Under the pieces are notes generated by a model. The model made no database searches and was not told where the DNA came from. It saw only the letters and a list, made by a program, of their open reading frames with translations. Shown here piece after piece: positions 1,317 through 57,260 of a stretch of 64,000 nt of DNA. The stretch is from Macrostomum lignano (lineage: Eukaryota), in assembly GCA_002269645.1 (NCBI GenBank), contig NIVC01001846.1, forward strand, positions 20,573 to 84,572, written 5' to 3'. The position numbers and the translations under genes were made by a program. Each line of letters starts with the position of its first letter. Within the stretch, counting starts at the first letter, position 1.

Positions 1317-2256
<940 letters not shown>

Positions 2257-3654: not shown

Positions 3655-3885
3655 CAGTGGAGTCCTAGGGTGGCTAAGGAGAGTCTCAGGGTGGGTTGGG
3701 TGAGTGATGGGGTGGCTAGGAAGAGTCTTAGGGTGGGTTTGGTGAGTAAAAGGGTGGCTAGGGAGTGTCTTAGGGTGGGTTGGTGAGTAAAAGGGTGGCT
3801 AGGGAGTGTCTTAGGGTGGGTTTGGTGAGTAAAAGGGTGGCTAGGGAGTGTCTTAGGGTGGGTTGGGTGAGTGATAGGGTGGCTA
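3655..3885 (+). repeat. About 42-bp G-rich minisatellite (GGGTGGCTAGGGAGTGTCTTAGGGTGGGTTTGGTGAGTAAAA), about 5-6 copies
   Basis: Directly visible tandem units. Confidence 0.9.
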
Positions 3886-5956: not shown

Positions 5957-6090
5957 CCCGGGAAAAAAAAACATGCTAAACTTTCCAAGTCAACCATGTA
6001 CTTGGATGAAATTGTTGACTTACCAAGTTTGCAAAGTATCATTGTCATGTACTTAAAAAGTATGCAATGTTTTTACCCAACTTCAATCGA

Positions 6091-10200: not shown

Positions 10201-10277
10201 GAAAGTACTTAGGCCACGAGGTTGCATTGTTGACTTACCAAGTACTTAGCAAGTTTGGTTTGTTTTATTTTCTCGGG

Positions 10278-11281: not shown

Positions 11282-12018
11282 TTAAACAATGTGCTGCTTG
11301 GAGTGCCTTTTCAGATCGCTGCCTTAACTGAATCTTTTGCATAACACCTTGCACTCGAATGGCTTTTTCCTGTGTGCACCCTGGAGTGCTTAGTGAGGTT
11401 GCTGCTGTCACTAAATATCTTGCCGCACAGCTTGCACTCAAACGGCTTTTCTCCTGTGTGCAGTCTTGAGTGAGAAGAGAGGTTGCTGCGGCGACTGAAT
11501 CTCTTTCTGCACACCTTGCACTCAAATGGCTTTTCTCCTGTGTGCACCCTGGAGTGCCTAATGTGGCTGCTGCTGACACTAAATCTCTTGCCGCACACCT
11601 TGCACTTGTGCGGTTTCGCCTTTATGTGCACTGCACTAATGTGAGCCTTTAGGTAGCTTTTTCTGGTGAACTTCTTCTGGCAAGTTTTGCACTGGAACGG
11701 TCTCTCGATGCCCTGAGCTCGACGGTGTCGTGTTGCAGCACTCTTTGAAGCTGGGGTCCTCTCGACTGACTCACACTCGTGACGCTTCATCACTGCAGAA
11801 CTGCCGGCTGCACACGGCTGCATCGCTGACTCATTGTGAGACGCGACTTGCTCGACCGCCGCTCTGACAGCTTCTGAGTTGGTCGCAGCCGCCTCCTCTG
11901 GCTCCGAGTCGCAGCCCATTCCGTGTGACCGCACATGACGTAAGTACTGCGCCGCTGCCGCTAGGGTGCGGCAGAATCGCCTGGGACAAAGGGGGCGGGC
12001 GACAGATACCCGGGGCAT
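11282..12018 (-). pseudogene. C2H2 zinc-finger gene, copy D (4 intact array fingers, last finger frameshifted with a stop)
   Basis: ORF 11311-12018 has the atypical N-terminal finger plus 4 array fingers. A 1-nt loss in the last linker (GGAAAAAGCC versus GGAGAAAAGCC) is followed by ECKVLCKRFS*GSDLKRHSKQHIV*. A CTGCAG acceptor with a pyrimidine tract lies just upstream. Confidence 0.8.
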
Positions 12019-17504: not shown

Positions 17505-18439
17505 GTGCTAAGGTTGTTTGACGCCGATATGGAAGTTGAGCTTCAAGTTGACAGTTCATCGGTCGGAGTTGGTTGCGTTTTGCTCCAGAATGGACAGCCT
17601 GTGGCGTATGGATCGGCTGCGCTGACCAACACGCAAAAGAACTATGCTCAGATTGAGAAGGAGACTCTGGCCGTCGTTATTGCTTGCAAGAAATTTCATG
17701 ACTACATCTATGGCCTACCAGTAGTACGAGTGACTACAGACCACAAGCCCCTGGAGGTTATTTTTAAGCGTGACTTGCTGCATGTTCCGCCACGCATTGC
17801 TCGAATGCTTTACCAACTCAAAAGATATAATCTGCGTGTATCCTGGGCACCGGGATCCAAGATGCTGATTGCCGATACGCTTTCAAGAGCTTACCTTCCG
17901 GAGGCCGAGGCTGCTCTAGACGACGAAATTGAGGTGGAGGTGCATCAAATGAGCCTCCCGATTTCTGCCATTCGTTTGCAAGAAATCCGAGACGAGACCC
18001 GCAAAGATTCGGACTTAAGTTCTGTAGCCCGGTTTGTTCAGACGGGTTGGCCAAGCAACTTTCGGAACATTTGCCACTCTGTCCGTCCGTATTGGAGCTT
18101 CAAGGAGGACTTGACCTACAATGATGGCGTGCTGATGAAGTTGGACCGCGTTATTGTTCCAGCATCGTTGCGGCAAAAGATTCTGCAAATTTTACACGAA
18201 GGTCATGGTGGCGCGGGCAAGACGGAGGCCCGAGCTCGTCAAATTCTGTACTGGCCAGGCATGTCAGCGGACATTAAGAACTTCGTGAAGAACTGCAGCA
18301 CTTGTCAAACTTTTCAGCCGGCCAACCCAAAGGAACCGCTGTTGAACCATCAGATTCCGAATGCACCATGGACCAAGGTTGGTTGTGATCTGCTGGACTT
18401 CAATGGTGACAAGTGGCTAATCGTTACCTGTTATTACAG
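17505..18439 (+). pseudogene. Gypsy pol: RNase H and integrase N-terminal part
   Basis: Stop-free up to the nested insertion (...WLIVTCYY). Confidence 0.9.
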
Positions 18440-20301
18440 TGTAGAGAAAATAAGACTAAAAACACTAGAACTAAATTAGATGTTAAATTGAATCTAAGAT
18501 AAGCCAGTAAGTGGGCGCAGGGCCCAAACAAGTATATTTATATGACTAATTTAGAGGGGGGTTGACTCCAGATAATAAGGAGAGGGGTGAAGTGCGCGAC
18601 TGAAGAGAGAGGCGAGAATGGAGAACCAATCAGAAGGCAGCAAGGGAGAGAGAGAGATAAGAATAACAAGATTGAGCTAGACAGAGAGAGAGAAAACGGA
18701 GTAAACAGAGACAATTGAAGGTGAACTAAGAAATGACTAGGAAAGTCGCGACACTCCCCCCAAAAAATGGAACATTTTTTTGAATTTTCGAGTACCATTA
18801 CCAATTGAAATTAATGAGTTAGAATTAGGTCGAATTAAATTGAAAAACACATTCACAATAAATGGTGTATAAAACGATTTGAAAAATACATAATGACTAA
18901 GAATTTGAATACAAAAACAGTAGAGCGAATGCAAAATATTAAGACCGAATTTTAAACTTAGATTTTTATTGAGTAGATTTTGAACCAATGAGAAGACTGA
19001 AAAGACTGAATATATCCGCCCTCCCCCCTAAAAATTAGCAATTTTTAATTGTAAATGGCTAGTACAGTTTAGAGAAAACACTAACATTGTCAGTTGAGTA
19101 AGAGAGCTGAGATGAGAGAGATGAGATGAGATGAGAATCAAGTTGATGAAAAGAACAACTGGAGACGACTAGAGACAACTGGAGACACTGACAAGAGAGG
19201 AGGGGACCGAGTGAAGAAAGTTTGACAAAGACCGGTGAGATTGACTGCCGACACCGACTCCGAAGACGTGACGACGGCCCGAGTTGAATTGTGAATATGC
19301 CGCCGGCACCGACTCCGAAGACGAGACCGACAGCCCGAGTTGAAATGCGAATATGCTGCCGGCACCGACTCCGAAGACGAGACCGACAGCCCGAGTTGAA
19401 ATGTGAATATGCTGCCGGCACCGACTCCGAAGACGAGACCGGCAACCAGAGATGAGACGATTGAGAGGCCGGCAGACGAGACGATTGAGAGGCCGGCAAC
19501 CAGAGACGAGACGATTGAGAGGCCGGCAACCAGAGACGAGACGATTGAGGCCGGCAACCAGAGACGAGACGATTGAGAGGCCGGCAACGAGACGATTGAG
19601 AGGCCGGCAACGAGACGATTGAGAGGCCGGCAACGAGACGATTGAGAGGCCGGCAAGCAGAAACGAGACGATTGAGAGGCCGGCAACCAGAGACGAGACG
19701 ATTGAGAGGCCGACAAGCAGAGACGAGATGATTGAGAGGCCGGCAACCAGAGACGAGACGATTGAGAGGCCGGCAACCAGAGACGAGACGATTGAGGCCG
19801 GCTGCCAGAGAGGAGACGATTGAGAGGCCGGTAGACGAGACGATTGAGAAGCCGGCAAGCAGAGACGAGACGATTAGGAGTCGATGACGGGATGACGAGA
19901 TGACTGGTGTAGGGCTACGACTACGACGATGGCATGGCCTTTGCCAGCCTTACTGTATTGACTGAATTATTTTTCATTGGGCGCCATGTAGAGAAAATAC
20001 TAAAAACACTAAAAACTATTTAATTGGATGTTAAATTGAATCTAAGATAAGCCAGTAAGTGGGCGCAGGGCCCAAACAAGTATATTTATATGACTAATTT
20101 AGAGGGGGGTTGACTCCAGATAATAAGGAGAGGGGTGAAGTGCGCGACTGAAGAGAGAGGCGAGAATGGAGAACCAATCAGAAGGCAGCAAGGGAGAGAG
20201 AGAGATAAGAATAACAAGATTGAGCTAGACAGAGAGAGAGAAAACGGAGTAAACAGAGACAATTGAAGGTGAACTAAGAAATGACTAGGAAAGTCGCGAC
20301 A
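18440..20301 (-). mobile_element. Non-autonomous LTR retroelement (TRIM/LARD-like), 1862 bp
   Basis: LTRs at 18440-18753 and 19987-20301 with TGT...ACA ends. 5-bp TSD TACAG (18435-18439 and 20302-20306). On minus, a PBS TGGCGCCCAA follows the 5' LTR and a PPT GGGGGGAG precedes the 3' LTR. The LTR contains ATTGG and TATAAATA. The interior is short tandem repeats with no gag/pol. Confidence 0.93.
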
Positions 20302-20306
20302 TACAG

Positions 20307-21102
20307 CAACTGGATCGAACTGGCAAAGTTAGGTCAACAGTCTGGAGCTGACTTGGTGATTGCTCGAATTAAGTCGATGTTCGCCAGGTTCGGTATCGTC
20401 GAAGAGCTGGTCAGTGACAATGGGCCCCCATTCAGCTCGTTTAAGTTTCAAGAGTTTGCTGCACAGTTTGGTTTCGTGCACACGCGCTCGTCACCCGGAT
20501 ATCCTCAGTCCAACGGGATGGCTGAAAAGGCAGTCAAAGTGGCAAAGAGCATCCTGAGGAAAGCTGATCAGCCTGAAATTGCGCTAATGGAATATCGAGC
20601 TTCACCAATTAGCGGTACGAGCACCAGCCCCAGCGAGCTCATGTTCGGTCGGTTGATTCGTACGAAGCTGCCAGCAGGTGAGGAGGCGCTGCTCAAAGAC
20701 AGAACAACCGGATTCTCTAAAGCCCCGCTGCAGGCTGCTCAAAAACGGCACTACGACCAGCAAGCCCGACCGCTCTCAACACTGAATCAGGGAGATGCAG
20801 TTCGTTTTCGGCACGGTTTCAGATGGGAGCCAGCCGTTGTGACGCAAGCTAACCCGGAGCACCGCAACTACCGACTGCTGACTCAAAGCGGCAGGGAGCT
20901 GATTCGCAATCGCCGGGACCTGCGACCAGTGCCGCCGCAGCAGTCCACTGCTGAAGCCGAAGACGTCCAGCTGGCGGCCCAGGCGGCTCCGGCCGGCGAT
21001 GAGTTGGCGGCATCAGATCTTGCGGAGCCTGAAGAGCCACTCCGCCGCTCTGCCAGGGCCACAAAGGGCATTCCGCCTCTCCGCTACAGACATGACGTGT
21101 GA
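20307..21102 (+). pseudogene. Gypsy pol: integrase core and C-terminus
   Basis: Resumes in frame after the TSD (S-NWIELAKL...VSDNGPPF...SNGMAEKAV...PLRYRHDV*). Confidence 0.9.
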
Positions 21103-25332: not shown

Positions 25333-25667
25333 CTATTTTGCTGCCGCTTGTGAATGCTTCAACAAATCGAGCACCTGCGACAGCTGCTTTTGCTGCTTTT
25401 TCTGATTACGTCGCAGTCTGTGAAGCTGCTCTCTGATGTCCAGAGTTTCTCGCTTCACCATCCTGGCAAGCTCGTCGCGAGTTCCGTCAACAGTTTTCTC
25501 CGTGTGCGCTCGCAGCGCCTCGAATGCGTCTTTGTGCCGCTCAACGCCCTGCCGCAGTCGGGGCGGCACTGGCGGAGCTGCTCAGCTTGGTACACCAGAA
25601 ACTGCCGATAGTCGTTGGGATAGTCGTGAAAACTACTGCGTTCCTGCCACCAGGGTGGACTCTGCTT
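25333..25667 (-). CDS. Probable C-terminal coiled-coil exon of the TRP channel gene (or remnant of a paralog)
   Basis: After a TTTAG acceptor: KQSPPWWQERSSFHDYPNDYRQFLVYQAEQLRQCRP-(1-nt shift in a G4 run near 25562)-RLRQGVERHKDAFEAL...LHRLRRNQKKQQKQLSQVLDLLKHSQAAAK*. Heptad-like pattern. Its link to the upstream exon is unresolved. Confidence 0.5.
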
Positions 25668-26554
25668 CTAAATTCATTGCGAGAAGATGAAAGCTGTTAC
25701 CATTTAAGTGTAAGATTCGTCGAAAACTGTTAAGGTACTTATTTCTATCGATAATCGACAGTAAAATTAACAACACGATACTTCGTCGTCGACATCGACG
25801 TTGACGTCGACGTCGAGTTGACGTCGAGAAAAGTCTAAGGAAAAATATTATTCGGAGAATGGCAGCGCTCAAGAGTACAGGTTGTGTTTTCTAAACAAAT
25901 ATTTGACAAATTTTTACTTCTTTTGCCTGGCGCTGAATAGGTCTATGGAACGTAGTACCCGCTAATAATCCTAAAGAAGTGCATTAACAGTAGGAAATTT
26001 ACAACCATTTCCGCCCGTTAATTGAACGACCAAAAAAGGGGAACAGTTTTTTTGCTGCGCGCCGGAACGGAGTCACAGCTCTAGCACACGAAATTCAAGA
26101 ACACCGGGGCTTGACCAGAGACAACAAAGAAATTCACAATTGGGTGTCCACAGTCGCCTGATAGCTACAGACCGGTAAAGCAGGCGACGGCGTCTGGAAG
26201 ACGACTGAATGCTTGAGAGAGTGCTTAGAAATTTGAAGCACTTGAAATTCCAGTGCCTGGTTTGCGTCATTCCAGCGCAACGAAAAATTTGCAAGGGTCC
26301 CCTCCTTGGTAGTTCTACCGTTAAAGAGACAGGAACAACAGACACTTCGCCAAAAGGAACTTTACATGTTTGCCGGTCTCCCGGTAGTATTTCATGAAAA
26401 ACGGCTTGATAAATTTATGAGTGCACCTCAAACGAAACATGTTCATAGTCAGCTTTGCGCCTCATTTGGAATTCGTAAGCCCAGAAGGTGATACATTGGG
26501 AATTTAGTGCTAAAAAACTGGAAGCTTCCTTACCTTTGCATTTGCAGCGGAAAA

Positions 26555-28500
26555 TCAGCCCACAGCAAAATTTGCATGGTCTTTTAAATCATAATTCAAA
26601 GTGTTGATTGTACTTGCCTCTTCCGGTTGAACCGAACGACGGTTCTCCAGACGCCGACACGCGTACCGCCCCAGCTTGCAAATGTAATGAGGAAACGAAA
26701 ACGGCGGTGGAAACGGGCTGACCTCGGAAAACTCGACCAGCATCTCGTACAGATTTTTACGCCAAATCACCTCTGCTTTGGTGTCCATCCTGGTGACTGT
26801 CAGGTTAAACAGTGCAATTAGCAGGTTCCACATCACTATGTTCACGATTAGCAAGTAGAGGAACATTAACAGGCCGCTGTACGCCCGGTAGCCGGCATGG
26901 TCTGAGCACGCCTCCAGAGTCTGTCTGGACCCGTTGCACACTACGCTCTCGGCGCCTTCAAAGAAGCCGAACGCCAGCGAGACCGGCAGGGAGAACACTT
27001 GCTTGGCTATTGACTCCGAGTCGCGTAAAATGCTCGCAGTAGAGAGGGTCACGGGAAATAGCAAGTTCACGTAGAATATGCCAAACGAATAGACCAGCAC
27101 AAGCATTATGATCAGGAATGGGGCCAAGTCGCTTAATAGAAGGCTTTTCAGCATCGATATTTTTGGTCCAGTGACCTTGAAGTAGCTAAGCAGGGATACC
27201 GACCGAAATCCCCAGAGCAGAAAGGATGCGCTCAGTACTACTTGGGCATTGTGCAGGCTGGTTGTATCGCCTCCCGTGCTCACTATTTTGAGTATGAGCC
27301 CAGCCAACAGCAGTAAGATTGCGGCCAGATCAAAATAATTAAATAAATCTGTGAAGTACCTGGGTACTTTCAGATGCCTTCCCCAAGCGTAGGTATCTTT
27401 GAGTTCTCCCCTATTAACCATGTCATTTATCTCCTGCGTGGCGAATGATAAAGCGAACATCCACATGACTGCATCAACAATGTGCACAGCCGCGGCCTGC
27501 GACTTCAACGACTGGCCAAAATCCGTTACGTACCAGGAGAAGAAGCACAGAAAGAAGAGGAAGAAGACCATGTGAATCCAGACTCGAAATCGAACTGACA
27601 ATAAAAAGCTAGGGACTCCGTCAGGTCGACTGCCAGGACTGCAACTGCTATTGAAGCTCGGGCAGCACGGTTGACTGCTACTGCTTGTACGCCACGACAG
27701 AGGAGGCGGTTTCTTCCACTGTTCGTCGATCATGCTGCTGAGGCAGTTGGTTGCAAACAGCTCGTCGCAATCGACTGTGTCGACCAGCTGCATGACCGAG
27801 AAGCATTCCGCCGGGCCCGAAAACGGAGCCACAACTTTGCCCTTTTTATCGACGAATTTTTTTAACGGAGCCTGAAACTTCGGACCGCTCACTTCATCCT
27901 TCTTGAAGTCCGCAGTCAAGTAGCGGAACAAAAGTTCACGCTCGTTCTGATCGGCTCTGACGTACAACTGCTCGAGAACATTAGTGAGAACGTTCAGGGC
28001 TTGCTTCATCATTTCGCTCAATTGTTCATGTCTTCCTCTTCGCATCTCAACTTGAGGTGTCATGTTGATTAGCAGCCGCAGTGTCTGAGGTATGATGTCA
28101 AACTGTGGCAGAACCATCAAGTCGGATAGCAGGTTTGCCTTATCAAAGAATATGACGCAATCCAGTAGCGATAATTCTGTCCGAGTAGTAGCTATTAAAT
28201 CCAGTGTTTCCATATTTGGAAAGTACTTTTGCTGGCTAGGATTCTTTGACTGATATCGTTTGCGCAACGCCTTGATAAGACGATCATCCGTGTCTCCAGT
28301 GACGTAATCCAGCACTACAAGGCTTCGAAGCATCTCTGTAGAGTCAAGTTCCAGAGCTCGGATGAGCAGCTTAACGTCGGCAGACTCCGCAGCAGATGCC
28401 TGTCCTTCAGCTTCATCCCCAGCTGTGGGCAATCCTCTGTCTCTCTCAATATCGGATCTCAGTACAGGGTCAGTGAATAGGGACAGCAGATTCCTGGTTT
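26555..28500 (-). CDS. TRP cation channel, pre-S1/MHR4-like plus S1-S6, pore and TRP domain (TRPM-type)
   Basis: MQLVDTVDCDELFATNCLSSMIDEQW, six hydrophobic segments, GFRSVSLL...TGPKISML...D, VNLLFP, a Cys pair after the pore, NLLIALFN, IWRKNLYEMLVEF..SPFPPPF. The frame is open from about 28575. Confidence 0.88.
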
Positions 28501-30974
28501 TTGACTGGCTCCTGACTGGTTTTGTCTGGCAGCTGCAGTGCCTTCTTGACCGGATCGACCAGCAGCAGAATCTCCCTCAGATCGACGCCAGCATCGGCAG
28601 CGGCGCTTCTAAGTACGTCCAGCTTTCCTTTGTTGCACGCAAAGTCAACGCACGTCTGACCGGAAGCTGTCTCGCAACCAAGCCTTGCATCGCAGAGACC
28701 TTTGCCAATTAGAAACCTCAGGTTTTCCTCGTGACCGGCTTCACAGGCAAAGTGCAGACAAGTTGCTCCGCTAAGCGAGCCCGACGACACTCGAATATTT
28801 AACAGTTTGTCAGAGCTCAGCGTGAAAAGCTGCTTCAATGGAGCTTCTAAGAATCTGATGTCGTAACGGCCGGAAAACACGTGAACAACATGCAAGCCGT
28901 CGGAGTTTCTCTGCAGCCTACTGAATGCCTCTTTCAATTCCGGCAGGTGGGAAAGCCTCACCAACACGTCGTATAGCGTCCGCTGACTGAACTCAGCGCT
29001 CATCAAACAATTCTTCTTGACATTGTTCTCCACCTTGGGATCAACGCCTCCATCGATGAGCTTCTTGACCGCTGACACAAACTCGTCCGCGTCAAAGTCC
29101 CGGTTAGGGAATGACTCAGAGGTGAGGAACAGCGCATGTAGCAGTGTGTTTCCCACCGAATCGATGCACATATGCCGTTTCACGTCGATAAATTCCGCTT
29201 TGAAAAAGTTGAAGTTCTTCAACAGACAGGCCAAAAACAGCGGATTTCTATCGTTCTTGTCAACTGACGCCGCGACCGCATCGGAGGGGTCGTCGAACTG
29301 GTGCTGTGGCGCCGATTGAACAAACATCTGGGCCCCGAAGGCTCTGTTGCGGGCGCACAAATGCAGACAAGTCCTACCGTCGCTATCCTTGCTGGCCAGT
29401 TCTTGCTCCTGACTTCCCTTCAGTTGGTTCATCATCCAGAAGAACACAGATTCATCTTTCTCGTGACGCTCGTTGCCTGTGGCCATGAACAGTGGAGTCC
29501 AACCGTGTTTGTCTCTGAGCGTAATGGAGTCCTTGCCTGCGCAACTAACCAGCGACTGGAATAAAGCGAGGCTTTGATAGGAGGCAGCTAAGTGAATAGC
29601 AGTTAGCAGTTCTTCATCTACTTCAGTAAGAGCTGATGAACCAAGCTTATCAACCAGGACCTTCAAGAACTCTCGTTGAATTGCATTGGCCGCTAGACAG
29701 TGAACTGGTTTTCGGCCTTTCGCTCCGGCGGTGTTCCACACCGGATTTTCTAGTGTCAGATGCTGAGAAAGCAGTTCCATGCATTCGTCGCTCTGCACCT
29801 GTGCAGCCAAGTGAATCGCCGTGTCGCCCTGTGCGTCCCTCAGCTGAAAAATCGCCGGCCGCTTGGCAAGATAGTCCAGAATCCAGTGAAGAGTCAAGAC
29901 CGACTTCTCATTGAGTGCCGCCCGATGCACCGGGGTACGTTTCAAGCCTCCCTCCATCTGCCAGACGTTGTGCTCGGGTGGTAGCCGGGTTGAAAACAAT
30001 TGCATGCACTCGTCGTCCTGATATTCGGCAGCGACATGCACAGCCGTGTCTCCGTTGGCGTCCTTAATTAAGAGATGATCGATGCTTCCAATGTTTGTCA
30101 CGAACCACTCAAGAGCGGCGTAGCCGTTCTCATTCCTGGCCGCCATGTGCACCGCCGTCTGCAGTTGATAGCCGGGAGTTAAGAAGCAGCTGGCGCCAAG
30201 GCGATCTTGCAGCATCTGCATGCACTCGAATCCCTGGTGTCGAGCGGCCAGGTGAACAGCCGTATTGTTCTCAGCGTCAGGCTTCTTAAATACCTCCAGC
30301 TCGAGATTCTCTAGCATCCATTTGAGCGTGTCACCGCTCTGTTCACCGGTGCAATTAAGCGCAGCCCGGTGCACCGGGGTCCGGCGCAGCGCCCCGCGCG
30401 CCTGCCAGACTCTCTGCGGCAGTTTGGCCTTGAGCAGCCGCATGCACTCGTCAGTCTGGAACTCGGCGGCCAGGTGCACAGCTGTGTCGCCCAACGAGTC
30501 CTTCACTGTAAGCGCCTGCTGGCCAAGATTGTCGAGGATCCATATCAGCACCTCGTGACCGTTGCTGTTCTTGGCGGCAAAGTGAGCCGCGGTGCTGTTC
30601 AGCCCGCTTACAACCGAGAAACAGCCGTCGCCCAGAGCGTTGCGCAGCGTCTGCATCGTCTCCGCGGCCAGCTCGCGGTCTTGGATGAGCGCGGCGAGGT
30701 GTACAACGTTTAGATTCAGCTCGTTACGCACCTGGCCGATGGCTTCGCCGCCCAACCTGCGCAGAAGGAACTTCAACACGGACAGATCCGAGATGTCTTC
30801 CACCGCTTCGAAAAGAACGTCCACGCCGAAGTCGTTGAGGTTGCGACCATCGTTGCTAACCAAGGCCCGCAGGATTTCCTCTTGGCCAGCTTGGACGCTC
30901 GATTCAATGGCTCGTTTTAGCCGCTCGTAGTCTGAGACTGGGCAGTACTCGAGTACTAGTCTGAGCTCGGCCAT
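28470..30974 (-). CDS. Ankyrin-repeat module (about 19 repeats), N-terminus of the TRP channel gene
   Basis: 834-aa ORF with repeated G.TAVHLAA / TPVHRAAL motifs. The ATG lies 2 nt after a TTTTTTATTCTCCAG acceptor. It is one frame off the channel ORF. Confidence 0.9.
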   Translation of the reverse strand: MAELRLVLEYCPVSDYERLKRAIESSVQAGQEEILRALVSNDGRNLNDFGVDVLFEAVEDISDLSVLKFLLRRLGGEAIGQVRNELNLNVVHLAALIQDRELAAETMQTLRNALGDGCFSVVSGLNSTAAHFAAKNSNGHEVLIWILDNLGQQALTVKDSLGDTAVHLAAEFQTDECMRLLKAKLPQRVWQARGALRRTPVHRAALNCTGEQSGDTLKWMLENLELEVFKKPDAENNTAVHLAARHQGFECMQMLQDRLGASCFLTPGYQLQTAVHMAARNENGYAALEWFVTNIGSIDHLLIKDANGDTAVHVAAEYQDDECMQLFSTRLPPEHNVWQMEGGLKRTPVHRAALNEKSVLTLHWILDYLAKRPAIFQLRDAQGDTAIHLAAQVQSDECMELLSQHLTLENPVWNTAGAKGRKPVHCLAANAIQREFLKVLVDKLGSSALTEVDEELLTAIHLAASYQSLALFQSLVSCAGKDSITLRDKHGWTPLFMATGNERHEKDESVFFWMMNQLKGSQEQELASKDSDGRTCLHLCARNRAFGAQMFVQSAPQHQFDDPSDAVAASVDKNDRNPLFLACLLKNFNFFKAEFIDVKRHMCIDSVGNTLLHALFLTSESFPNRDFDADEFVSAVKKLIDGGVDPKVENNVKKNCLMSAEFSQRTLYDVLVRLSHLPELKEAFSRLQRNSDGLHVVHVFSGRYDIRFLEAPLKQLFTLSSDKLLNIRVSSGSLSGATCLHFACEAGHEENLRFLIGKGLCDARLGCETASGQTCVDFACNKGKLDVLRSAAADAGVDLREILLLVDPVKKALQLPDKTSQEPVKNQESAVPIH

Positions 30975-31021
30975 GGCTGGAGAATAAAAAAAGTGCTGGA
31001 GTCACTGGGTGCTTAGGGATA

Positions 31022-32175
31022 CACCCCTGAGTTTAATACCGACACTCCGAGTTTGATACCGACACGCCTGAGTTTGATACCGATAACCCCTGAGTTTGAT
31101 ACCGACACCCCTGAGTTTGATACCGACATCCCTGAGTTTGATACCGACACTCCGAGTTTGATACCGACACGCCTGAGTTTGATACCGACATCCCTGAGTT
31201 TGATACCGACACACCTGAGTTTGATACCGACACACCTGAGTTTGATACCGACACTCCTGAGTTTGATACCGACACCCAAGAGTTTGATACCGACACACCT
31301 GAGTTTGATACCGACATCCCTGAGTTTGATACCGACACACCTGAGTTTGATACCGATAACCCCTGAGTTTGATACCGACACCCCTGAGTTTGATACCGAC
31401 ATCCCTGAGTTTGATACCGACACTCCGAGTTTGATACCGACACCCCTGAGTTTGATACCGACACACCTGAGTTTGATACCGACACACCTGAGTTTGATAC
31501 CGACACACCTGAGTTTGATACCGACACTCCTGAGTTTGATACCGACACCCAAGAGTTTGATACCGACACACCTGAGTTTGATACCGACATCCCTGAGTTT
31601 GATACCGACATCCCTGAGTTTGATACCGACACACCTGAGTTTGATACCGACACACCTGAGTTTGATACCGACATCCCTGAGTTTGATACCGACACACCTG
31701 AGTTTGATACCGACACTCCGAGTTTGATACCGACACGCCTGAGTTTGATACCGACATCCCTGAGTTTGATACCGACACACCTGAGTTTGATACCGACACA
31801 CCTGAGTTTGATACCGACACTCCGAGTTTGATACCGACACGCCTGAGTTTGATACCGACATCCCTGAGTTTGATACCGACACACCTGAGTTTGATACCGA
31901 CACACCTGAGTTTGATACCGACACTCCGAGTTTGATACCGACACGCCTGAGTTTGATACCGACATCCCTGAGTTTGATACCGACACACCTGAGTTTGATA
32001 CCGACACCCCTGAGTTTGATACCGACACACCTGAGTTTGATACCGACACCCCTGAGTTTGATACCGACACACCTGAGTTTGATACCGACACCCCTGAGTT
32101 TGATGCCGACACCCCTGAGTTTGATACCGACACCTCTGAGTTTGATACCGACACCCCTGAGTTTGATACTGATAA
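31022..32175. repeat. 21-bp minisatellite (CTGAGTTTGATACCGACACAC), about 55 copies
   Basis: Directly visible tandem units. Confidence 0.97.
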
Positions 32176-33005: not shown

Positions 33006-33671
33006 TAGCTTGTACGGAAGCGAAGCTAATGAAAGATGTACTTTGTGAAGAGAAATGGAGAGAGTGGAAATCGAGTATCCGATATCAAGTGTGACATTTC
33101 GTAGAAGACTGGGTCAGACTGTTAGTCAGTCAGTTAGACAATTAGTCAAGCCAATCTGTCTTTGCAGACTCAAAGACTCTCCGGACAAGAAAACAGCAGA
33201 CACATGCGAGCACATCTGTGGTCAAGCCTGACAGTTTCTTCTCAAAGATCAAAATAGATTTCAACGATTGACCATGCTCGAACTCAATAGACTCTATACA
33301 GATTTAGGCTATGTATGATGGTGCAAACACTTCATTTCCCCCATGTTCTGCGTGCAGTCTCCCTCCATCTCCCTCCATCTGTTGAGTTCAAAGTTGAACA
33401 GTCTGCCCGCTTTATCTGACAGGTAAATCAGGGATGGGATCTCTGAAAATTGCACTTCGCGCAACCCCTGAAGATCTGAGATAGGGAAACTGCGACTGAG
33501 ATGGAGCTACATAGCGGTGAGTTTGAGCCCGATGGATTGCATCATTTTCCGCTCTTTTATCGATTGCGTTACGCCAAATGTTTGCGGACACAGCAGTTGC
33601 TTAATGGAGTCTAGAAAGTTTAAAACTACGAGCTAAATTCTCTTGCACCGCAGTCCGAATTCTTCAATTTT

Positions 33672-34480
33672 TCAATGGCGCAAAAACTCAATGGCGCCAA
33701 AACCAAAACTGTTTAAATGGCGCCAAAACCAAAAATGTTTTAATGGCGCCAAAAATGTTTCAATGGCGCCAAAACTGTTTCAATTGCGCCAAAACCAAAA
33801 ATGTTTTAATGGCGCCAAAAATGTTTCAATGGCGCCAAAACTGTTTCAATGGCGCCAAAACTGTTTAAATGGCGCCAAAACCAAAACTGTTTCAATGGCG
33901 CCAAAACTGTTTCAATGGCGCCAAAACTGTTTTAATGGCGCCAAAAATGTTTCAATGGCGCCAAAATTGTTTCAATTGCGCCAAAACCAAAAATGTTTTA
34001 ATGGCGCCAAAAATGTTTCAATGGCGCCAAAACTGTTTCAATGGCGCCAAAACTGTTTAAATGGCGCCAAAACCAAAACTGTTTCAATGGCGCCAAAACT
34101 GTTTCAATGGCGCCAAAACTGTTTTAATGGCGCCAAAAAAAACTGTTTCAATGGCGCCAAAACTGTTTAAATGGCGCCAAAACAAAAACTGTTTCAATGG
34201 CGCCAAAACTGTTTCAATGGCGCCAAAACTGTTTAAATAGCGCCAAAACTGTTTCAATGGCGCCAAAACAAAAACTGTTTCAATGGGGCCAAAACTGTTT
34301 CAATGGCGCCAAAGCCGAAACTGTTTCAATGGCGCCAAAACTGTTTCAATGGCGCCAAAACTGTTTAAATGGCGCCAAAACAAAAACTGTTTCAATCGCG
34401 CCAAAACCAAAAATGTTTCAATGGCGCCAAAACCGTTTAAATGGCGCCAAATCAAAAATGTTTTAATGGCGCCAATCCAA
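33672..34480. repeat. About 20-bp minisatellite (ATGGCGCCAAAACTGTTTCA)
   Basis: Directly visible tandem units. Confidence 0.95.
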
Positions 34481-35339
34481 AAAACGGTTAACCTGTTTTA
34501 GAGTGACAGATAACTCCTCTGGGAAGACAGCAGTTGCCAGGAGCACTGTAAATCACCCCGTCTCGTTGTAGGAAATCCACTCCCACTTTCTTTGCCTTCA
34601 TTTCTTAGAATAGCCAGTAGCCCAGGTACATCATGTACGTGATTTCTCGCAGACAGACAAAGTTGACAAACTTCCCTTTATTGAAGCACCAGCCAGGCAA
34701 CAAAACTTTAACAAAAGATTCCATGTTTTCTTTTCGTTTCTTTAATATCTTCTTTATTGAGGTTGACGTGATGAAAAAATTTTTAAAGCGAAATTGCGTC
34801 TGGCGATGGCGACCCTCAACTTCACCTTTAGGTATATGCGGGCCCGGGAGGCTGAGACCTATTGGCTATTGATTTGAATATGTTCAAACAGACACAGCGT
34901 GAATCAGAGGCAGTGGCAATTGTCTGTGGGAGATTTCAGATGGCGATTGGGGGAAAGTGATTTTTCCCCATCCCTGTCAGTCTCCGTTCGCCCTGAGTTG
35001 CAACCCTGCAGGTTCTCAAAATTATATTTTCATTTTATATAACAATGGCCCACAGCAACACAAAGTGTGGGATGCCGGACCGAATTCCATTTTTTACATC
35101 ATTTTTTTCTTCTTTGATACTATTTTGTTCCTAGACTTGCTATTACTGTTGTTGTTGCAGACATTGCTTGTGGACAACATAATTTTGATTTTTCAATAAC
35201 TCTGAGACACCTTACAGTTATAGGTGTTGAATTTTTCGCACGTTTTTTTTCTATAAATAAACGAGTTGGTTTGTTCAATATACGACCTTAGGAACCTTTG
35301 ATTTATTTGGTATCTGTTTTGATAGACAGAATCCTAGAT

Positions 35340-36145
35340 TCGGTGGATAGATTAATAGATTCTGTAGACAAATTGATAAATTCGGTAGACAGTTTGATAG
35401 ATTCGGTAGACAGTTGATAGATTCGGTAGACAGATTGATAGATTCGGTAGACAGTTGGATAGATTCGGTAGACAGTTTGATAGATTCGGTAGGCAGTTGG
35501 ATAGATTCGGTAGACAGTTGATAGATTCGGTAGACAGTTGTATAGATTCGGTAGACAGTTGGATAGATTCGGTAGACAGTTGGATAGATTCGGTAGACAG
35601 TTGTATAGATTCAGTAGACAAATTGATAGATTCGGTAGACAGATTAATAGATTCGGTAGACAGTTTGATAGATTCGGTAGACAGATTAATAGATTCGGTA
35701 GACAGTTTGATAGATTCGGTAGACAAATTGATAGATTCGGTAGACAGTTTGATAGATTCGGTAGACAGATTGATAGATTCGGTAGACAGTTGTATAGATT
35801 CGGTAGACAGTTAGGTAGATTCGGTAGACAGTTAGGTAGATTCGGTAGACAAATTGATAGATTCGGTAGACAGTTGGATAGATTCGGTACACAGTTAGGT
35901 AGATTCTGTAGACAGTTTGATAGATTCGGTAGACAGATTAATAGATTCGGTAGACAGATTGATAGATTCGGTAGACAGATTGATAGATTCGGTAGACAGT
36001 TGTATAGATTCGGTAGACAGTTGTATGGATTCGGTAGACAGTTGTATAGATTCGGTAGACAGTTGTATGGATTCGGTAGACAGTTGTATAGATTCGGTAG
36101 ACAGTTGTATAGATTCGGTAGACAGTTGTATAGATTCGGTAGATA
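35340..36145. repeat. 20-21-bp minisatellite (ATAGATTCGGTAGACAGTTG)
   Basis: Directly visible tandem units. Confidence 0.95.
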
Positions 36146-36884
36146 GACTAACAGATCATGTATATATACGCAAAAATACAAAAATATTATAAATAAGTGC
36201 ATGAGGGCAGGACTCAATGTTTATCTGACTGTATAGAAAGCATTTTATGATGCTGAGACAATTTATTCTCTGACTAATAAATTATACTTAATTTTCGATC
36301 GATCGTTTTGGAGCATGGTGTAGAAAATTAGCTTCACAAATGGTCCACCCTGGCAACGAAAGGCTGCATTTTAAAAAGTCATCACCAAACCTTAACAGGT
36401 GTGCTGCTGTATTGATGAGGCCTTTAATAACCGTTGCATCCCCTGACCGGCAATTATAAACAACAGGTCAAATTCTGATAGATTCAATTTGCTCGAATCG
36501 CTTCTCTATACCTAAGGCGGTTGCCACGCGGGTCAAAGATTGAAATAATTAGCAATTAAAGGGGTTTAATTAACCCTCTTCTTATATAACCTTACTAGCC
36601 AATCTTCAATATATTTGTGTATATTATAACACTACACAAACTGAAATACTGATAATTCCATGCATTTAACCAACCATGTCTCGTGTGACAGACCTACTGA
36701 GGAGGCTGGGACGACTTGATGACGGAAAGGAGCCCAGGATGGAGGAACCGACGGACCTGCGCGTGCTTAACAAGCGACACCTGCATAATGTGGGGTCCAA
36801 CCAATACCTGCGCAGCAGGGAGCCTGCTTTGAGAATCTTATTGATATCTCAGTTCGATTCTAAGTTGGATTCTTTGAAAAAAGA

Positions 36885-39081: not shown

Positions 39082-40389
39082 CGAGGGATACTCTAAAAGT
39101 TTTGCAATTCAACTATTTAAAGTTAATTTTGCCAAACTTTTCTATTACAATCCTTCAAAGTAGGCTCCCCGGAACTGCAAACACTTGTGCGCTCGTCCGA
39201 GCCACTTGTTCATCAAGCCCTGGAAGTCTTCAATTGGGATGCCGTCAATCGCCTCCTTCGCCGCCTGCTCCAGCTCCTCGTCGGACTGAAACCTGTGCCC
39301 CCTAAGCGACTTTTTGATTTCTGGAAAGAGCCAGAAGTCGCAGGGGGCGAGGTCTGGTGAGTAGGGCGGGTGTGGTAGTGTTGAAATGCCCTCTTGGTCC
39401 AGGAACGCTCGAGTTGCAGCAGCCGTGTGGGCGGGGGCGTTGTCATGGTGAAGTTTCTGCCCTCGCATTCCCGTCCTTGGCGCCCTCTGGGTCACGCTGT
39501 CGATCACGACTGGCAAGCACTCTTCAGTGTACCATCGAGCAGTGACTGTAGCTTGACCCTCCAGCTTCACCATCGCCACCACGCCTTGTGAGTCGAAGAA
39601 GATGGCAAACATCCGCTTGCCCTGGGACCGGGACCGCCTTGCTTTCAGGGGTCGTTGACCACCTTTCGGCACCCACTCTGCACTGCTGCGCTTTGTCTCG
39701 ACGTCAAAATGATAGAGAAACGTCTCATCACCAGTGATGACCTCAGAGCGGCGCTGATGGCTCCCGTGCTCATATCGATCGATGAGAAACTGACAGAACT
39801 CCCTGCGGGCCTGTTTCTGAGCATCTGTCAGGATGTGGGGTATCCATCGGGCACAAAGCTTCCTGACTCTCAGGTGATCGTGTAGAATCGTATCGACCGC
39901 TGCCGATCCAATGCCGACATTCATAGCTAGCATGTCCGTGGTGATTCGCGGATCCTGATGAATCGGCTCCTGCACTGCAGCGATGTTTTCCTCCGTCGCT
40001 GCTGTCGGAGGTCTCCCGGGCCGGGGGTCGTCAGAAAAGCTGGTCCTGCCGGCCTGGAACTCGCGGTACCAGCGTGTAACCGTAGCATATGACGGCGCTT
40101 GAGCCTCCAATGTTGCTAGTAGCTCGGCATGAGTCTCAAGCGCCGTGAGCTTTCGCTTGTGGCAGTACCAAATTAGTAGCCGATTCTGCTCACGATTCAA
40201 TTCCATGGCTGCAGCTGTACAGTTAAGGAGTCTCTGACTTTGACTGGGGGCTGAGCAGGCGTATATGTATGAATTCACTTGAAAATTGAGGTGGGGACTA
40301 TGTACATGTTTATTGTACAGAGAGTTGGTTTTGAAGATTGTGCGACTTGCGCAAGTGGTTGAATTGCAAAACTTTTGGAGTATCCCTCG
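39082..40389 (-). mobile_element. Full-length mariner (DD34D) transposon in PLK4 intron 1
   Basis: 32-bp TIRs CGAGGGATACTC(T/C)AAAAGTTTTGCAATTCAAC with one mismatch, TA TSDs at 39080-39081 and 40390-40391, 1308 bp. Confidence 0.95.
39145..40206 (-). CDS. Mariner transposase, 353 aa, intact
   Basis: MELNREQNR..., HTH with PRPGRP, WIPHILT, TGDETF, HHDNAPAH, PYSPDLAPCDF; 34 residues between the 2nd and 3rd Asp. Confidence 0.95.
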   Translation of the reverse strand: MELNREQNRLLIWYCHKRKLTALETHAELLATLEAQAPSYATVTRWYREFQAGRTSFSDDPRPGRPPTAATEENIAAVQEPIHQDPRITTDMLAMNVGIGSAAVDTILHDHLRVRKLCARWIPHILTDAQKQARREFCQFLIDRYEHGSHQRRSEVITGDETFLYHFDVETKRSSAEWVPKGGQRPLKARRSRSQGKRMFAIFFDSQGVVAMVKLEGQATVTARWYTEECLPVVIDSVTQRAPRTGMRGQKLHHDNAPAHTAAATRAFLDQEGISTLPHPPYSPDLAPCDFWLFPEIKKSLRGHRFQSDEELEQAAKEAIDGIPIEDFQGLMNKWLGRAHKCLQFRGAYFEGL

Positions 40390-40483
40390 TAGATTCAACA
40401 AAAGTTGAATTGGATTTCCAATTCTGTCTCGCAATAACCTACAATGCCACGTCTCCTATTCACAACAATCCCGCATTGTACAG

Positions 40484-42441: not shown

Positions 42442-43172
42442 GTGAGTTCTCACACCGACATTACACTGTTAATTGAAACACCGACAACACATAGTTGTAA
42501 ATTGTAAAAATGATAATTTTATGCTAATTGATCTGTTAAACCTGACTGTTTTTGCCATCGCTATCTCTCTAAAACCATCCCGTTGAGCAACTGGGATTTC
42601 TAATTGATCAGTTTTCTACCTGATTGAGTCAATGCTTGATTGGCATTTTTTCGTTAGCAATGAATTCGGGCAGAAGAACCTCGGGAATTGCGACTAACAG
42701 TCTTGCCAGAGATTGTCAGGTTCCGCCAATGAGTTTAGGTGCAAAGTCTGTCAGCTCAAGTCAGTCGAGACGGCAAACCAACAAATTGATTCAAAATAAG
42801 ATTCCCAAGAACAAATTTGCCCCCGAGGCTTGAGCGCCGGCTTCAGGATGCGTTGCGAAATCTTCAGACCCCAGCACCTCCAGCTGGACAAGGAGGAAAT
42901 CTTGCTGTGGTTCCGCAGCTTAGGTGGCACGCTCTGGCGCTTCCAAAGTGTGGGGAAAAGTCAGAGTTCAGTTCTGTAGACACTTTGGCTTAAAATCCAG
43001 ATCAGCCAACATCAGCCAGACAGATCGCGCTGCATGAGTGAACATGAGCAGTTGTTGAAATTTGAGCAATAAAAACAGTCTATATATTGTTTCAATTTTA
43101 CTATGCGCAATTTGATTTTTATGATATCATATTTTCAAACAATCAAACATTGAACCTTGCATGCCACTGCAG

Positions 43173-43443
43173 GGAGGTCAGCAGTCAGGGAGTGCAAGGT
43201 CCAGAAGTGGACGTCTGGTCGTTGGGCGTGATGTTGTACACCATGCTGGTTGGCAAGGCGCCGTTCGACACCAAGGACCCGAAGTCGACCATAGACAACG
43301 CTAGGCGGCTGAAGTACGACATCCCGGGCAGCCTGCACCCCGAGGCCATCGACCTGATTGCTAAACTGCTGCGGGAGAGACCGAAAGAGCGACTGACTCT
43401 GGCTCAAGTTCTGCAGCACCCGTTCATGCGGGACAAGGCGCAT
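43173..43443 (+). CDS. PLK4: PLK4 exon 6
   Basis: EVSSQGVQGPEVDVWSLGVMLYTMLVGKAPFD...LAQVLQHPFMRDKAH; donor GTGAGT. Confidence 0.92.
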
Positions 43444-43469
43444 GTGAGTGCTCTTTGCCAGGTCAAAAA

Positions 43470-43812
43470 ACCAAAAATGGCACTCATCACGGATCCCAAA
43501 AATGGCACTTATCACAGATCCCAAAAATGGCACTCATCACGGATCCCAAAAATGGCACTTATCACAGATCCCAAAAATGGCACTCATCACGGATCCCAAA
43601 AATGGCACTTATCACAGATCCCAAAAATGGCACTTATCACAGATCCCAAAAATGGCACTCATCATCACAGATCCCAAAAATGGCACTCATCATCACAGAT
43701 CCCAAAAATGGCACTCATCATCACAGTTCCCAAAAATGACATTCATCATCACAGATCCCGAAAATGGCACTCATCACAGATCCCAAAAATGGCACTCATC
43801 ATCACAGATCCC
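43470..43812. repeat. 25-28-bp intronic minisatellite (CACAGATCCCAAAAATGGCACTCAT)
   Basis: Directly visible tandem units. Confidence 0.92.
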
Positions 43813-44871
43813 ATGGCAGAAGCCATCGTCTCACACTGTCAGGGAATTTGTCGATATCTGCCGACAGGTGGGTGGCTACTGTAGACAAAATCTCTTTATC
43901 ACACACAGAGGCCAGCCGCCCCCCAAACACATGAAGTATTTCGTCTTATCATCGATAACGACGCCCCTACACCCCCTGATCCCAGTATCCATGGCATGAG
44001 ATGGATAGGAATTCCTAAGCTGTTGCGATAGCCTTGTCTGTCCGCCCTCCCGTCTCGGGGATGACGCCGTATAACAAAAAGTGACCAACTTATTGCGTAA
44101 GACTTTGAGCTGTGGGAGAGATTGCTCGCCGTCTCCTCTCCCCGGCTTCCAGATCCCCCCTCCTCGATTGTAAATATTTATTATCCTTCAAAAGCCATTC
44201 TAAAAAGCCGAAATGCCTCAGCTCAGCTTCCCTTGACCGAGCGAGGCAGAGGAACTGGCCAACTGGTCATCCCTAGCAACCAGGGATTGCGATGAAAGCA
44301 AAATGGACACAACAAGCGCTGTTGCTTGCAGAGGACAGGATTCACGGGGAAGGAAATTAAATTCCTATCTTTTAATATTTTGAGAATCTATAGAATATGC
44401 TGTTACTCTGCCATCCACAGCTCTTGAGAGCCGCTGTTGCATCCCCTATAGAAACCAGATGGACTGCAGAGGGTGGGGAATAGCGGATCGATTGTATCCC
44501 ATGCATCACTCTCGCCTATTTTTGAGCGCTCGATACTCGAGCGTTGGAAAAGTTTTGAGTGCAGGCGAGAAATGAAAGTGTGTAGAGGTTCAATCCTATC
44601 AAGTGCCCATCAGTAGCCCCTATCTCTCTCTCTAAAAATCTGGTTGCCAAGGCACTTGTTGAGCTTCGGTTCGGACAAAACAAAAGCGGACTCATCACAG
44701 TCCCCCGGTCCATTTTTCGAACTTCGTCAACCAAAACGGGGCGGTTATTATTATTAGAATTTAATGGAGTAACGACAATTGTTCCGCAGAGAGAAAAAAA
44801 TCATATTTTTCCATTCTCCATTCGGTCTTCAACAATAACTATTAATTGTTCCAATTCTGCGAACCTTCTAG

Positions 44872-57187: not shown

Positions 57188-57260
<73 letters not shown>

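Follow-up and report, generated by a model that had tools for sequence, protein, structure and literature searches.

A disrupted copy of a likely ankyrin-repeat, TRPM-like channel gene from an expanded family in Macrostomum lignano

The window, by which we mean the whole 64,000-nt stretch of contig NIVC01001846.1 (GCA_002269645.1) that was analysed, very likely carries a copy of Mlig014503, a Macrostomum lignano gene present in three near-identical copies. In its intact form this gene encodes an ankyrin array joined to a TRPM-like channel; the copy in the window is disrupted. In the deposited annotation a product of 834 aa, an exact match, is located on this contig, and this ankyrin product, ending at a premature TGA, is all that is annotated for the window copy. 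An intact paralog joining the two parts, on whose existence the original prediction hinged, was found in g1 (BOX15_Mlig014503g1; P0166/PAA63393.1), which encodes 1559 aa and is located on contig NIVC01001847.1. Apart from two indels, a MAFFT alignment of the window and L002 shows ~99.6% DNA identity between the window gene and g1 and few substitutions in the coding sequence. The g1 product is predicted to be a single polypeptide that has ~19-20 ankyrin repeats at the N-terminus, followed by a helical linker resembling MHR4 and a TRPM-like S1-S6 region with its TRP helix, and a coiled coil at the C-terminus.

All gene features given here are located on the minus strand. Exon 1 (26618-30974) comprises the ankyrin array, the helical linker, S1-S6 and the TRP helix; it is a single open frame in g1 and broken in the window copy. 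When P0166 was aligned to the window by tblastn, residues 1-821 matched positions 30974-28515, and residues 819-1451 matched positions 28507-26609 in a different frame. Exon 1 ends with ...CCGGAAGAG/GCAAGT, and the sole intron (25668-26617, 950 nt), which became apparent when P0166 was searched by tblastn against L002 and the window, has a GC...AG boundary. Exon 2 (25333-25667) encodes the C-terminus and was covered by two P0166 HSPs in different frames. The block originally described as essentially intronless is not a single reading frame in the window, and one intron precedes the last exon. The fusion of ankyrins to the channel holds for g1, where the frame is continuous across the junction, but not for the window, where the two parts lie in two frames and two frameshifts are present.

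The main lesion is a 16-nt insertion (28499-28514; CAGGAGCCAGTCAAAA on the coding strand), adjoined by a substitution, which shifts the frame between the ankyrin and the channel part in the MAFFT alignment of the window and L002. It is absent from both g1 and the copy g2, which do not differ at this position. Because of this shift a premature TGA (28470-28472) terminates the 834-aa ankyrin-only product, and the channel ORF lies in another frame than the ankyrin ORF. A second lesion was located in a run of C residues near 25561-25564, which is 1 nt shorter in the window than in g1 (C4 vs C5). The coiled coil is cut off by this loss, since three-frame translation revealed that its ORF (25569-25333) is read in another frame than the 34 codons with which the last exon starts. 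The distal coiled coil of the original prediction exists as an ORF with heptad spacing of hydrophobic residues, as read by eye, but is out of frame in the window copy. As assembled, the window copy cannot make a channel, and most likely represents a duplicate or allele that was recently inactivated.

It appears rather improbable that the two frame-breaking indels are errors of the PacBio-based Mlig_3_7 assembly and that the window holds an intact, functional copy after all. The copy is possibly less damaged than it looks, since the length change in the C homopolymer and the small 1-2-nt indels that are likewise present in g2 are typical long-read assembly errors, and the near-identity of the copies with their few coding substitutions points in the same direction. 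Nevertheless, a complex 16-nt insertion is no typical consensus error: with its adjoining substitution it does not resemble a homopolymer slip, the two other copies are concordant at the insertion site, and the deposited annotation stops at the same resulting TGA.

The 834-aa ankyrin ORF (30974-28470) was recognised by Pfam Ank_2 in 10 stretches (E=8e-46). Its array (28590-30725) is made up of ~19-20 repeats, partly organised in two-repeat super-units with up to 59% identity. Counting of motifs in this ORF yielded 18 core ankyrin motifs and, in addition, one or two degenerate repeats, and the initial estimate of about 19 repeats was right. The AlphaFold model (AF2) of the ankyrin part showed regular helix pairs with a pLDDT of 84.8.

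The channel ORF (28432-26555, 625 aa; Pfam Ion_trans, 3e-6) encodes a 6-TM TRP channel, in which every channel motif that had been listed beforehand was found in place. A helical linker (27794-28390; modelled by AF2 as helices within ORF2 residues 18-173), MHR4-like by predicted fold, leads from the ankyrins to the pre-S1 motif MQLVDTVDCDELFATNCLSSMIDEQW (27716-27793), which is conserved in the family consensus. The S1-S6 transmembrane domain (26798-27595) was delimited by AF2 helices and by alignment to human TRPM2, the helices of the ORF being located at residues 280-303, 314-340, 363-385, 390-415, 422-458, 472-487 and 512-570. In the alignment to human TRPM2 the S2 segment QEIND (27436-27422) and the S3 segment NYFD (27340-27329) fall on the Ca2+-site positions, and the window protein carries E, D (for Q), N and D at the positions used in TRPM2/4/5/8. 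These are followed by the motif GPKISMLKSLLLSD (27169-27128), NLLFP before the pore (27067-27053), the pore helix with the filter FSLPVSLAFGFFEGAE (26948-26995; aligned to 'fympywmiyge' of TRPM3), the Cys pair CNGSRQTLEAC (26938-26906), NLLIALF (26827-26807) and the TRP helix with the proline box IWRKNLYEMLVEFSEVSPFPPPFSF (26693-26767; aligned to TRPM3). The pore motif had been called non-canonical, and indeed the filter reads F-G-F, unlike that of every characterised TRPM, where F/Y-G-E/Q is present. In the window ORFs and in the intact P0166, Pfam found ankyrin families and Ion_trans only, with no SLOG/MHR1-2 (LSDAT_euk), TRPM_tetra, NUDIX or kinase domain.

The transmembrane region is TRPM-like and not TRPA- or TRPN-like, as the original prediction had it. 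When the channel part was compared with PDB sequences by phmmer, the best 60 matches were all TRPM chains and Chlamydomonas TRP1, with TRPM3 as the best TRPM (5e-19). An S1-S5 query gave 35 matches at E≤1, all of them TRPM or TRP1, and no TRPA, TRPN, TRPC or TRPV chain at this threshold. Foldseek with the channel model returned TRPM4, TRPM3 or TRPM8 in all of the best 50 matches (TMq 0.56-0.60), with alignments of ~650 columns for the 625-aa query. This span includes the 280-aa pre-S1 linker, which fits a retained MHR4-like module; by hhalign, the linker profile was not significantly similar to TRPM MHR4 and weakly similar to the linker of the TRPM_MCLZ clade described below (E=7e-5). Canonical TRPM channels (2, 3, 4, 5, 7, 8) are the best match by sequence or fold for the linker, the transmembrane domain and the TRP helix, and they have in common with the window protein the GPK after S4, the LFP ahead of the pore, a Cys pair in the pore loop, the S6 motif NLLIA(L/V)F, the TRP box W...Y...E...PPP and the residues at the Ca2+-site positions. 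Nevertheless, core identity is only 21-30%, the filter differs, and the window protein lacks SLOG/MHR1-3.

The architecture, originally considered unusual, has already been published for parasitic flatworms. TRPM_MCLZ (Smp_333650), the characterised schistosome channel that meclonazepam targets and activates, combines an ankyrin N-terminus with a 'TRPM-like' channel and is devoid of MHR1/2/SLOG, and orthologs with the same layout are present in trematodes, cestodes and monogeneans (PMC10788528, PMC11731825, PMC12861061). N-terminal ankyrins, no SLOG, a TRPM-like channel and flatworm origin, which define this group (PMC12861061, PMC11731825), were all found for the window gene family, which thus adds a new gene expansion and not a new kind of channel. 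Both also have TRPM-like S1-S6 segments, a TRP helix with a PPP box and C-terminal helices, and the S4 Arg, the TRP-helix Tyr and the S2 Glu are common to TRPM_MCLZ and the window protein. The TRPM_MCLZ clade was identified by an Opisthorchis model that has ankyrins and a doubled channel domain, as expected from the exon 3a/3b duplication in the literature, together with the published pocket pattern H827/H831, Y864/E868, R943 and the S4 H/Y/F variant, which proteins of Dicrocoelium and Schistocephalus reproduce exactly, spacing included. This pattern is absent from the window protein, where the S1 His pair and the S2 Tyr are missing; only the S2 E, the S4 R and the TRP-helix Y (published TRP Y1117) are kept in the window family.

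The window gene is no ortholog of TRPM_MCLZ but belongs to a clade of its own, in which M. lignano shows a heavy expansion. Core identity between the two clades is ~23%. Compared to TRPM_MCLZ the ankyrin array is much longer, with its ~19-20 repeats, the linker has departed much further from MHR4, the gene has two exons instead of three, and in M. lignano it has undergone massive duplication. P0060, which is also an M. lignano protein, is more closely related to the TRPM_MCLZ clade.

Ankyrins had further been proposed to replace MHR1-3. The absence of SLOG/MHR1-2 and the ankyrins in its place agree with this, and a domain swap is plausible, in which ankyrins may have replaced MHR1-3 once or twice. 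The alternative, that the channel stems from an ancient ankyrin-bearing lineage, is unlikely: both flatworm ankyrin clades would then form an old, separate TRP family, sister to TRPM and TRPS, that kept the ancestral ankyrin N-terminus, and no flatworm-specific replacement would have taken place. In its favour, all other group-1 TRP families bear ankyrins, and Himmel et al. place the loss of ankyrins ahead of the split between TRPM and TRPS, in a phylogeny sampled outside the Platyhelminthes (PMC7306681). TRPS (soromelastatin, ced-11-like), the sister family and divergent relative of TRPM, has kept SLOG and has no ankyrins (PMC7306681), unlike the window gene family. In an unrooted NJ tree without outgroup, the window clade and the TRPM_MCLZ clade were separated from all MHR-bearing sequences by a bipartition with 85% bootstrap support, which would fit an ancient lineage. 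However, this grouping may be due to long-branch attraction, and the core profile of each flatworm clade matches canonical TRPM with a better score than it does the other clade, more like fast-evolving derivatives. Furthermore, the linker of the TRPM_MCLZ clade shows clear homology to TRPM MHR4 (98%, E=1e-14 in hhalign), and every ankyrin-bearing match that was assigned to an organism belongs to a flatworm, so that an ancient lineage would require loss everywhere else. If such a lineage did exist, the flatworm channels would be living intermediates between ankyrin-type TRPs and SLOG-type melastatins and not the product of a recent domain replacement.

The family of the window gene is expanded in M. 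lignano, with at least 18 paralogs that bear ankyrins and lack SLOG/MHR1-2, which bears out the suggested lineage-specific expansion. An exhaustive phmmer search gave 28 representatives at E<1e-30. Among 178 proteins with a matching channel core (search matches and the cluster members fetched alongside), ankyrin N-termini were present in 40, MHR N-termini in 68 and both in none, and none of the 40 ankyrin-bearing relatives matched TRPM N-termini. Where the core score exceeded 100 bits and enough N-terminal sequence was available, nearly every match bore ankyrins; the exception is P0031 with its cluster members, which show neither ankyrin nor MHR domains. All matches above 100 bits whose source was traced came from M. 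lignano, except for one metagenome contig. The window clade, comprising 19 distinct sequences, received 99% bootstrap support in the unrooted NJ tree.

That the join between ankyrins and channel is a gene-model artefact, produced by annotation merging two adjacent genes, has a very small chance of being true. Chimeric gene models are frequent in M. lignano (P0011, for example, carries STIM-like EF-hand/SOAR domains), and the Opisthorchis model merges two alternative exons. Nevertheless, g1 encodes ankyrins and channel within one exon with no stop in between, and P0006 is a single uninterrupted ORF of 1537 aa on a 5.1-kb contig. The M. lignano proteins P0001 and P0002 cross the junction as well, and the junction sequence (LPDK...ARN..L..F.D) is conserved across the paralogs. 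In addition, Sm.TRPM_MCLZ, which has the same layout, was cloned as a cDNA and works as a channel when functionally expressed (PMC10788528).

TRPN/NOMPC and TRPA1 resemble the window gene family in their long N-terminal ankyrin solenoid before a 6-TM TRP channel, but the transmembrane domain of the window protein shows no detectable preference for them. The best PDB matches of the ankyrin region were NOMPC (1e-17), ankyrin-1/2 (1e-13) and TRPA1 (~1e-8), and since latrotoxins and DARPins occur in the same list as ankyrin-1/2, we take the likeness to NOMPC and TRPA1 to be generic among long ankyrin arrays. A channel of the TRPN/NOMPC or TRPA type, which the length of the array and these matches might suggest, has next to no likelihood and is contradicted by the TRPM and TRP1 chains that alone matched the transmembrane region, neither type appearing among the best 60 PDB matches, among the S1-S5 matches at E≤1 or among the best 50 Foldseek matches.

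By homology, the intact protein would probably assemble as a tetramer into a non-selective cation channel that lets Ca2+ pass. It would be gated via the S1-S4 pocket and the TRP helix, and the ankyrin solenoid may serve as a cytoplasmic sensing or tethering arm. The residues kept at the Ca2+-site positions of TRPM2/4/5/8 suggest that the intact channel depends on Ca2+.

TRPM_MCLZ is a validated anthelmintic target, and work on its unusual layout, with ankyrins in the place of SLOG, has until now been confined to parasites. M. lignano is free-living and genetically tractable, and with at least 18 divergent paralogs of this layout plus P0060 it could serve as a model organism for the role of the ankyrin arm and for gating. 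Since flatworms are missing from the key TRPM/TRPS phylogeny, the family also bears on the question of when TRPM lost or regained ankyrins. The window copy itself, broken and annotated as an ankyrin-only protein, carries a more modest practical message. Upstream of its start codon a minisatellite (31021-32169; 21-bp unit, ~55 copies according to TRF) stops at a distance of ~45 bp; it is also present upstream of g1, as the alignment of the window and g1 runs on through it.

The gene lies on the minus strand of the window, where three ORFs were called: an ankyrin ORF of 834 aa (30974..28470), a channel ORF of 625 aa (28432..26555) and a last ORF of 78 aa (25569..25333), which represents the coiled-coil frame. 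They belong to a two-exon gene, with exon 1 at 30974-26618 and exon 2 at 25667-25333, interrupted by a single intron of 950 nt with a GC...AG boundary. The GC donor reads GAG/GCAAGT (window 26612-26617), the AG acceptor is at 25668-25672, and the same boundary is found in the annotated intact paralog. The ankyrin ORF contains Pfam Ank_2 (8e-46) in 10 stretches, and a motif count gave 18 clear core motifs at a spacing of about 33-42 aa plus one or two degenerate repeats, in line with the about 19 repeats originally predicted. Its AlphaFold model (mean pLDDT 84.8) consists of regular helix pairs. Two-repeat super-units with mutual identities of up to 59% make up part of the array, so it grew by internal duplication. 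The channel ORF encodes a 6-TM channel (Pfam Ion_trans 3e-6), and all channel motifs quoted in the original prediction are present in it at the located positions. For the 78-aa ORF Pfam returned only a weak CorA match below the cut-off (E=0.017), which was treated as noise. A 21-bp minisatellite (window 31021-32169, some 55 copies with 91% matches) lies upstream of the gene, ending at a distance of about 45 bp from the start codon, and also occurs upstream of the intact paralog; thus, the promoter-proximal region is a tandem array.

In the window copy the ankyrin and channel parts, which had been described as one essentially intronless block, are not joined. The ankyrin ORF stops with a TGA at 28472-28470, and the channel ORF is in a different frame. 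A tblastn comparison with junction-spanning M. lignano relatives placed the frame switch between 28515 and 28507. Since homology reaches 28515/28507 in both frames, there is no space for a short intron joining the two ORFs. By reasoning, a frame-restoring intron near the switch was rejected as well, because no GT...AG segment there restores the frame. The deposited annotation on NIVC01001846.1 lists the 834-aa ankyrin product only. Its 90% cluster holds two further proteins, and the paralog search proposed with the original prediction thereby yielded an intact gene: P0166 (PAA63393.1, BOX15_Mlig014503g1, hereafter g1) has 1559 aa, is encoded on a different contig and runs uninterrupted from the ankyrins through the channel into the coiled coil. 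The fusion therefore exists in g1, while the window copy is frameshifted. The other protein, P0167 (g2), has 503 aa and comprises the channel only.

Alignment of the window with g1 DNA showed about 99.6% identity across the gene and two frame-breaking differences, namely a 16-nt insertion in the window, CAGGAGCCAGTCAAAA, at 28514-28499, and a C-run shorter by 1 base near 25564. The shorter C-run shifts the coiled-coil frame relative to the opening 34 codons of exon 2. The g2 gene (NIVC01002369.1, 2831-8695) has neither of these lesions, but its coding exon shows a 2-nt deletion and a 1-nt insertion not shared with the window, and its intron contains large indels. As the window copy and g2 each have frame-changing indels, the assembly contains a single intact copy among the three. 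Errors of long-read assembly could account for the small indels but are a much less likely source of the complex 16-nt insertion. Judged from the sequence as assembled, the predicted sole product of the window copy is the ankyrin protein of 834 aa, which ends in a short tail read in the shifted frame, and the channel cannot be made.

The TM region was found to be TRPM-like, as had been predicted, and not of the TRPA or TRPN type. When the channel ORF was compared with all PDB chains, TRPM3 was the best match (5e-19), followed by TRPM2, 4, 5, 7, 8 and 1, and the best 60 matches consisted of TRPM chains and Chlamydomonas TRP1. A query restricted to S1-S5 matched 35 chains at E<=1, solely TRPM and TRP1. 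No TRPA1, NOMPC, TRPC or TRPV chain was among them at this threshold, although structures of all four are contained in the PDB. The AlphaFold model of the 625-aa ORF, with a family alignment as input, reached a pLDDT of 75 and a pTM of 0.70. Its best 50 Foldseek matches were TRPM4, TRPM3 and TRPM8 throughout (TMq 0.56-0.60), aligned over about 650 columns that cover nearly the whole query including a 280-aa helical linker. Alignment with human TRPM2 places a Glu and an Asp (replacing Gln) in S2 and an Asn and an Asp in S3 of the window protein at positions which we take to be those of the TRPM2 Ca2+ site. The pore filter is indeed non-canonical, with F-G-F in place of the Y-G-E of TRPM3. Pfam detected no SLOG (LSDAT_euk), TRPM2-like, TRPM_tetra, NUDIX or kinase domain in the window ORFs or in intact P0166. 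The best PDB match of the ankyrin part was NOMPC (1e-17); as ankyrin-1/2, latrotoxins, DARPins and TRPA1 come next in the same list, this reflects generic ankyrin similarity. A TRPN or TRPA identity of the channel was thus rejected.

An exhaustive phmmer search of 1.84 billion representative proteins gave 721 matches at E<=1e-3, with a sharp top group of 28 (E<1e-30, 35-54% identity). Beyond these, significance falls off to E of about 1e-20 and ordinary TRPMs start, e.g. the 'TRPM2-like' proteins of Octopus and Styela. Word-indexed protein searches returned 2, 7 and 3 matches; the family results rest on the exhaustive search and on cluster look-ups. A local screen of the N-termini of 178 proteins with a matching channel core (search matches and cluster members fetched alongside) assigned ankyrins to 40 and TRPM-type MHR domains to 68, and none had both. 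Proteins with a core score above 100 bits and judgeable N-terminal sequence were almost all ankyrin-bearing; the exception is M. lignano P0031 with its cluster members, which has neither domain. Among the best 34 matches, Pfam found Ank in 22 and LSDAT in one. One of the 34 also has STIM1-like EF-hand and SOAR domains; presumably this is P0011 (M. lignano, 1988 aa), an ankyrin plus TRPM-like paralog recorded as 'EF-hand domain-containing protein', which is explicable as a chimeric gene model or as a genuine, if curious, fusion.

All looked-up proteins of the top group are from M. lignano except P0006, an uninterrupted ankyrin plus TRPM-like ORF of 1537 aa at 42-4655 of a 5.1-kb contig (JAZBNS010000602.1, GCA_036350755.1) binned in a 'Kangiellaceae' bacterium MAG. 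P0006 is nested within the M. lignano clade, and its contig almost certainly represents DNA of a flatworm-like animal that was wrongly binned with a bacterium. With g1 uninterrupted and P0006 a single ORF, a merged gene model as the source of the architecture was discarded. An unrooted NJ tree of 295 TM-core columns, built without TRPC, TRPN, TRPA and TRPV sequences, recovered the clade of the window gene (19 sequences, pairwise <90% identical) with 99% bootstrap, and with 100% when P0031 was included. The expectation of a lineage-specific expanded family was borne out.

The layout itself, predicted to be unusual, has already been published for flatworms. TRPM_MCLZ (Smp_333650), the meclonazepam-activated schistosome channel, has a long ankyrin-repeat N-terminus without MHR1/2 or SLOG, a TRPM-like VSLD, pore and TRP helix, and C-terminal helices; orthologs are reported from more than 60 trematodes, cestodes and monogeneans, and the authors proposed the group name 'TRPM-like' (Park et al. 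2024 JBC PMC10788528; Sprague et al. 2024 PMC11731825; Rohr et al. 2026 PMC12861061). A second clade in our tree (100% bootstrap) comprises proteins from Opisthorchis, Dicrocoelium, Schistocephalus and further contigs, and a word-indexed search that used the channel region of the Dicrocoelium protein brought in proteins of Paragonimus, Hymenolepis, Echinostoma and Protopolystoma. Two sequence features led us to identify it as the TRPM_MCLZ clade. The Opisthorchis viverrini models (P0171/P0025) have a single ankyrin region followed by two full channel domains in a row. This matches a published duplication in Opisthorchis, Clonorchis and Paragonimus of exon 3, in which the entire channel domain is encoded (alternative exons 3a/3b; Rohr et al. 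2026 PMC12861061); the model strings both alternatives together. Furthermore, the pocket residues recur with identical spacing, based on published residue numbers: Dicrocoelium and Schistocephalus have S1 H827/H831, Y864/E868 33 residues later and R943 75 residues later. The S4 variant is Tyr in Dicrocoelium (trematode) and Phe in Schistocephalus (cestode), as published for Fasciola (Tyr) and Echinococcus (Phe). Of this pocket only three residues are conserved in the window protein (Glu in S2, Arg in S4 and Tyr in the TRP helix), and it is assigned to a paralogous clade, not to the TRPM_MCLZ orthologs. A literature search found no paper on the large M. lignano ankyrin plus TRPM-like clade. The new elements are modest: this clade is large and specific to M. 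lignano, its ankyrin array is much longer, and its pore filter diverges.

In the unrooted tree, a split with 85% bootstrap sets the two flatworm clades that carry ankyrins apart from every MHR-bearing sequence. This grouping could reflect long-branch attraction, because the TM-core profile of each scores higher against canonical TRPM (320 for the window clade, 378 for the TRPM_MCLZ clade) than against the other (216). The linker of the TRPM_MCLZ clade is clearly homologous to TRPM MHR4 (hhalign 98%, E=1e-14). In profile comparisons the window-clade linker showed weak similarity to that linker (E=7e-5) and no detectable sequence similarity to MHR4. Since all ankyrin-bearing relatives with a nameable source are flatworms, parsimony favours a TRPM scaffold that kept MHR4 and had its N-terminus replaced, or re-expanded, specifically in flatworms. 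The predicted substitution of MHR1-3 by ankyrins, in one or more events, agrees with this. Himmel et al. (PMC7306681) inferred ankyrin loss before the TRPM-TRPS split with Platyhelminthes unsampled; that the window family is a surviving ankyrin-bearing stem lineage is the less likely reading next to the flatworm-specific origin.

For the intact copy, sequence and models show the domain order, a TRPM-like fold and conserved gating motifs. By analogy with TRPM_MCLZ and TRPM structures, the protein would form a tetramer through the TM domain and the C-terminal coiled coil and conduct cations with Ca2+ permeation. Gating would involve the S1-S4 cavity and the TRP helix and may depend on intracellular Ca2+, and the ankyrin solenoid would act as a cytoplasmic interaction or tether domain.

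The window as a whole is rich in repeats and shows strong local swings in GC skew. Three minus-strand ORFs (1317-2126, 5039-5974, 11311-12018) encode tandem arrays of C2H2 zinc fingers; Pfam confirmed two of them, with up to 11 fingers (zf-C2H2 5e-62). Two have a common N-terminal region, and the three seem to be zinc-finger genes clustered locally. On the plus strand, 17505-18479 and 20281-21102 hold fragments of the pol gene of an LTR retrotransposon (RT-RNaseH, integrase zinc-binding domain, integrase core), separated by about 1.8 kb of repeat-rich sequence. A mariner/Tc1-like transposase ORF of 429 aa, which combines a Mos1-type HTH with a DDE_3/Transposase_1 domain, occupies 39145-40434 on the minus strand. 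Exons of a PLK4-like kinase gene were found on the plus strand at 43087-45975 (kinase C-lobe 43087-43884; Plk4 polo boxes PB1 and PB2 44995-45975). Long minisatellite arrays at 9668-10201, 33643-34170, 35303-36217, 50811-51672, 52616-53197, 54164-55444, 55704-56560, 57141-58839 and 61700-63343 give rise to spurious multi-frame ORFs.
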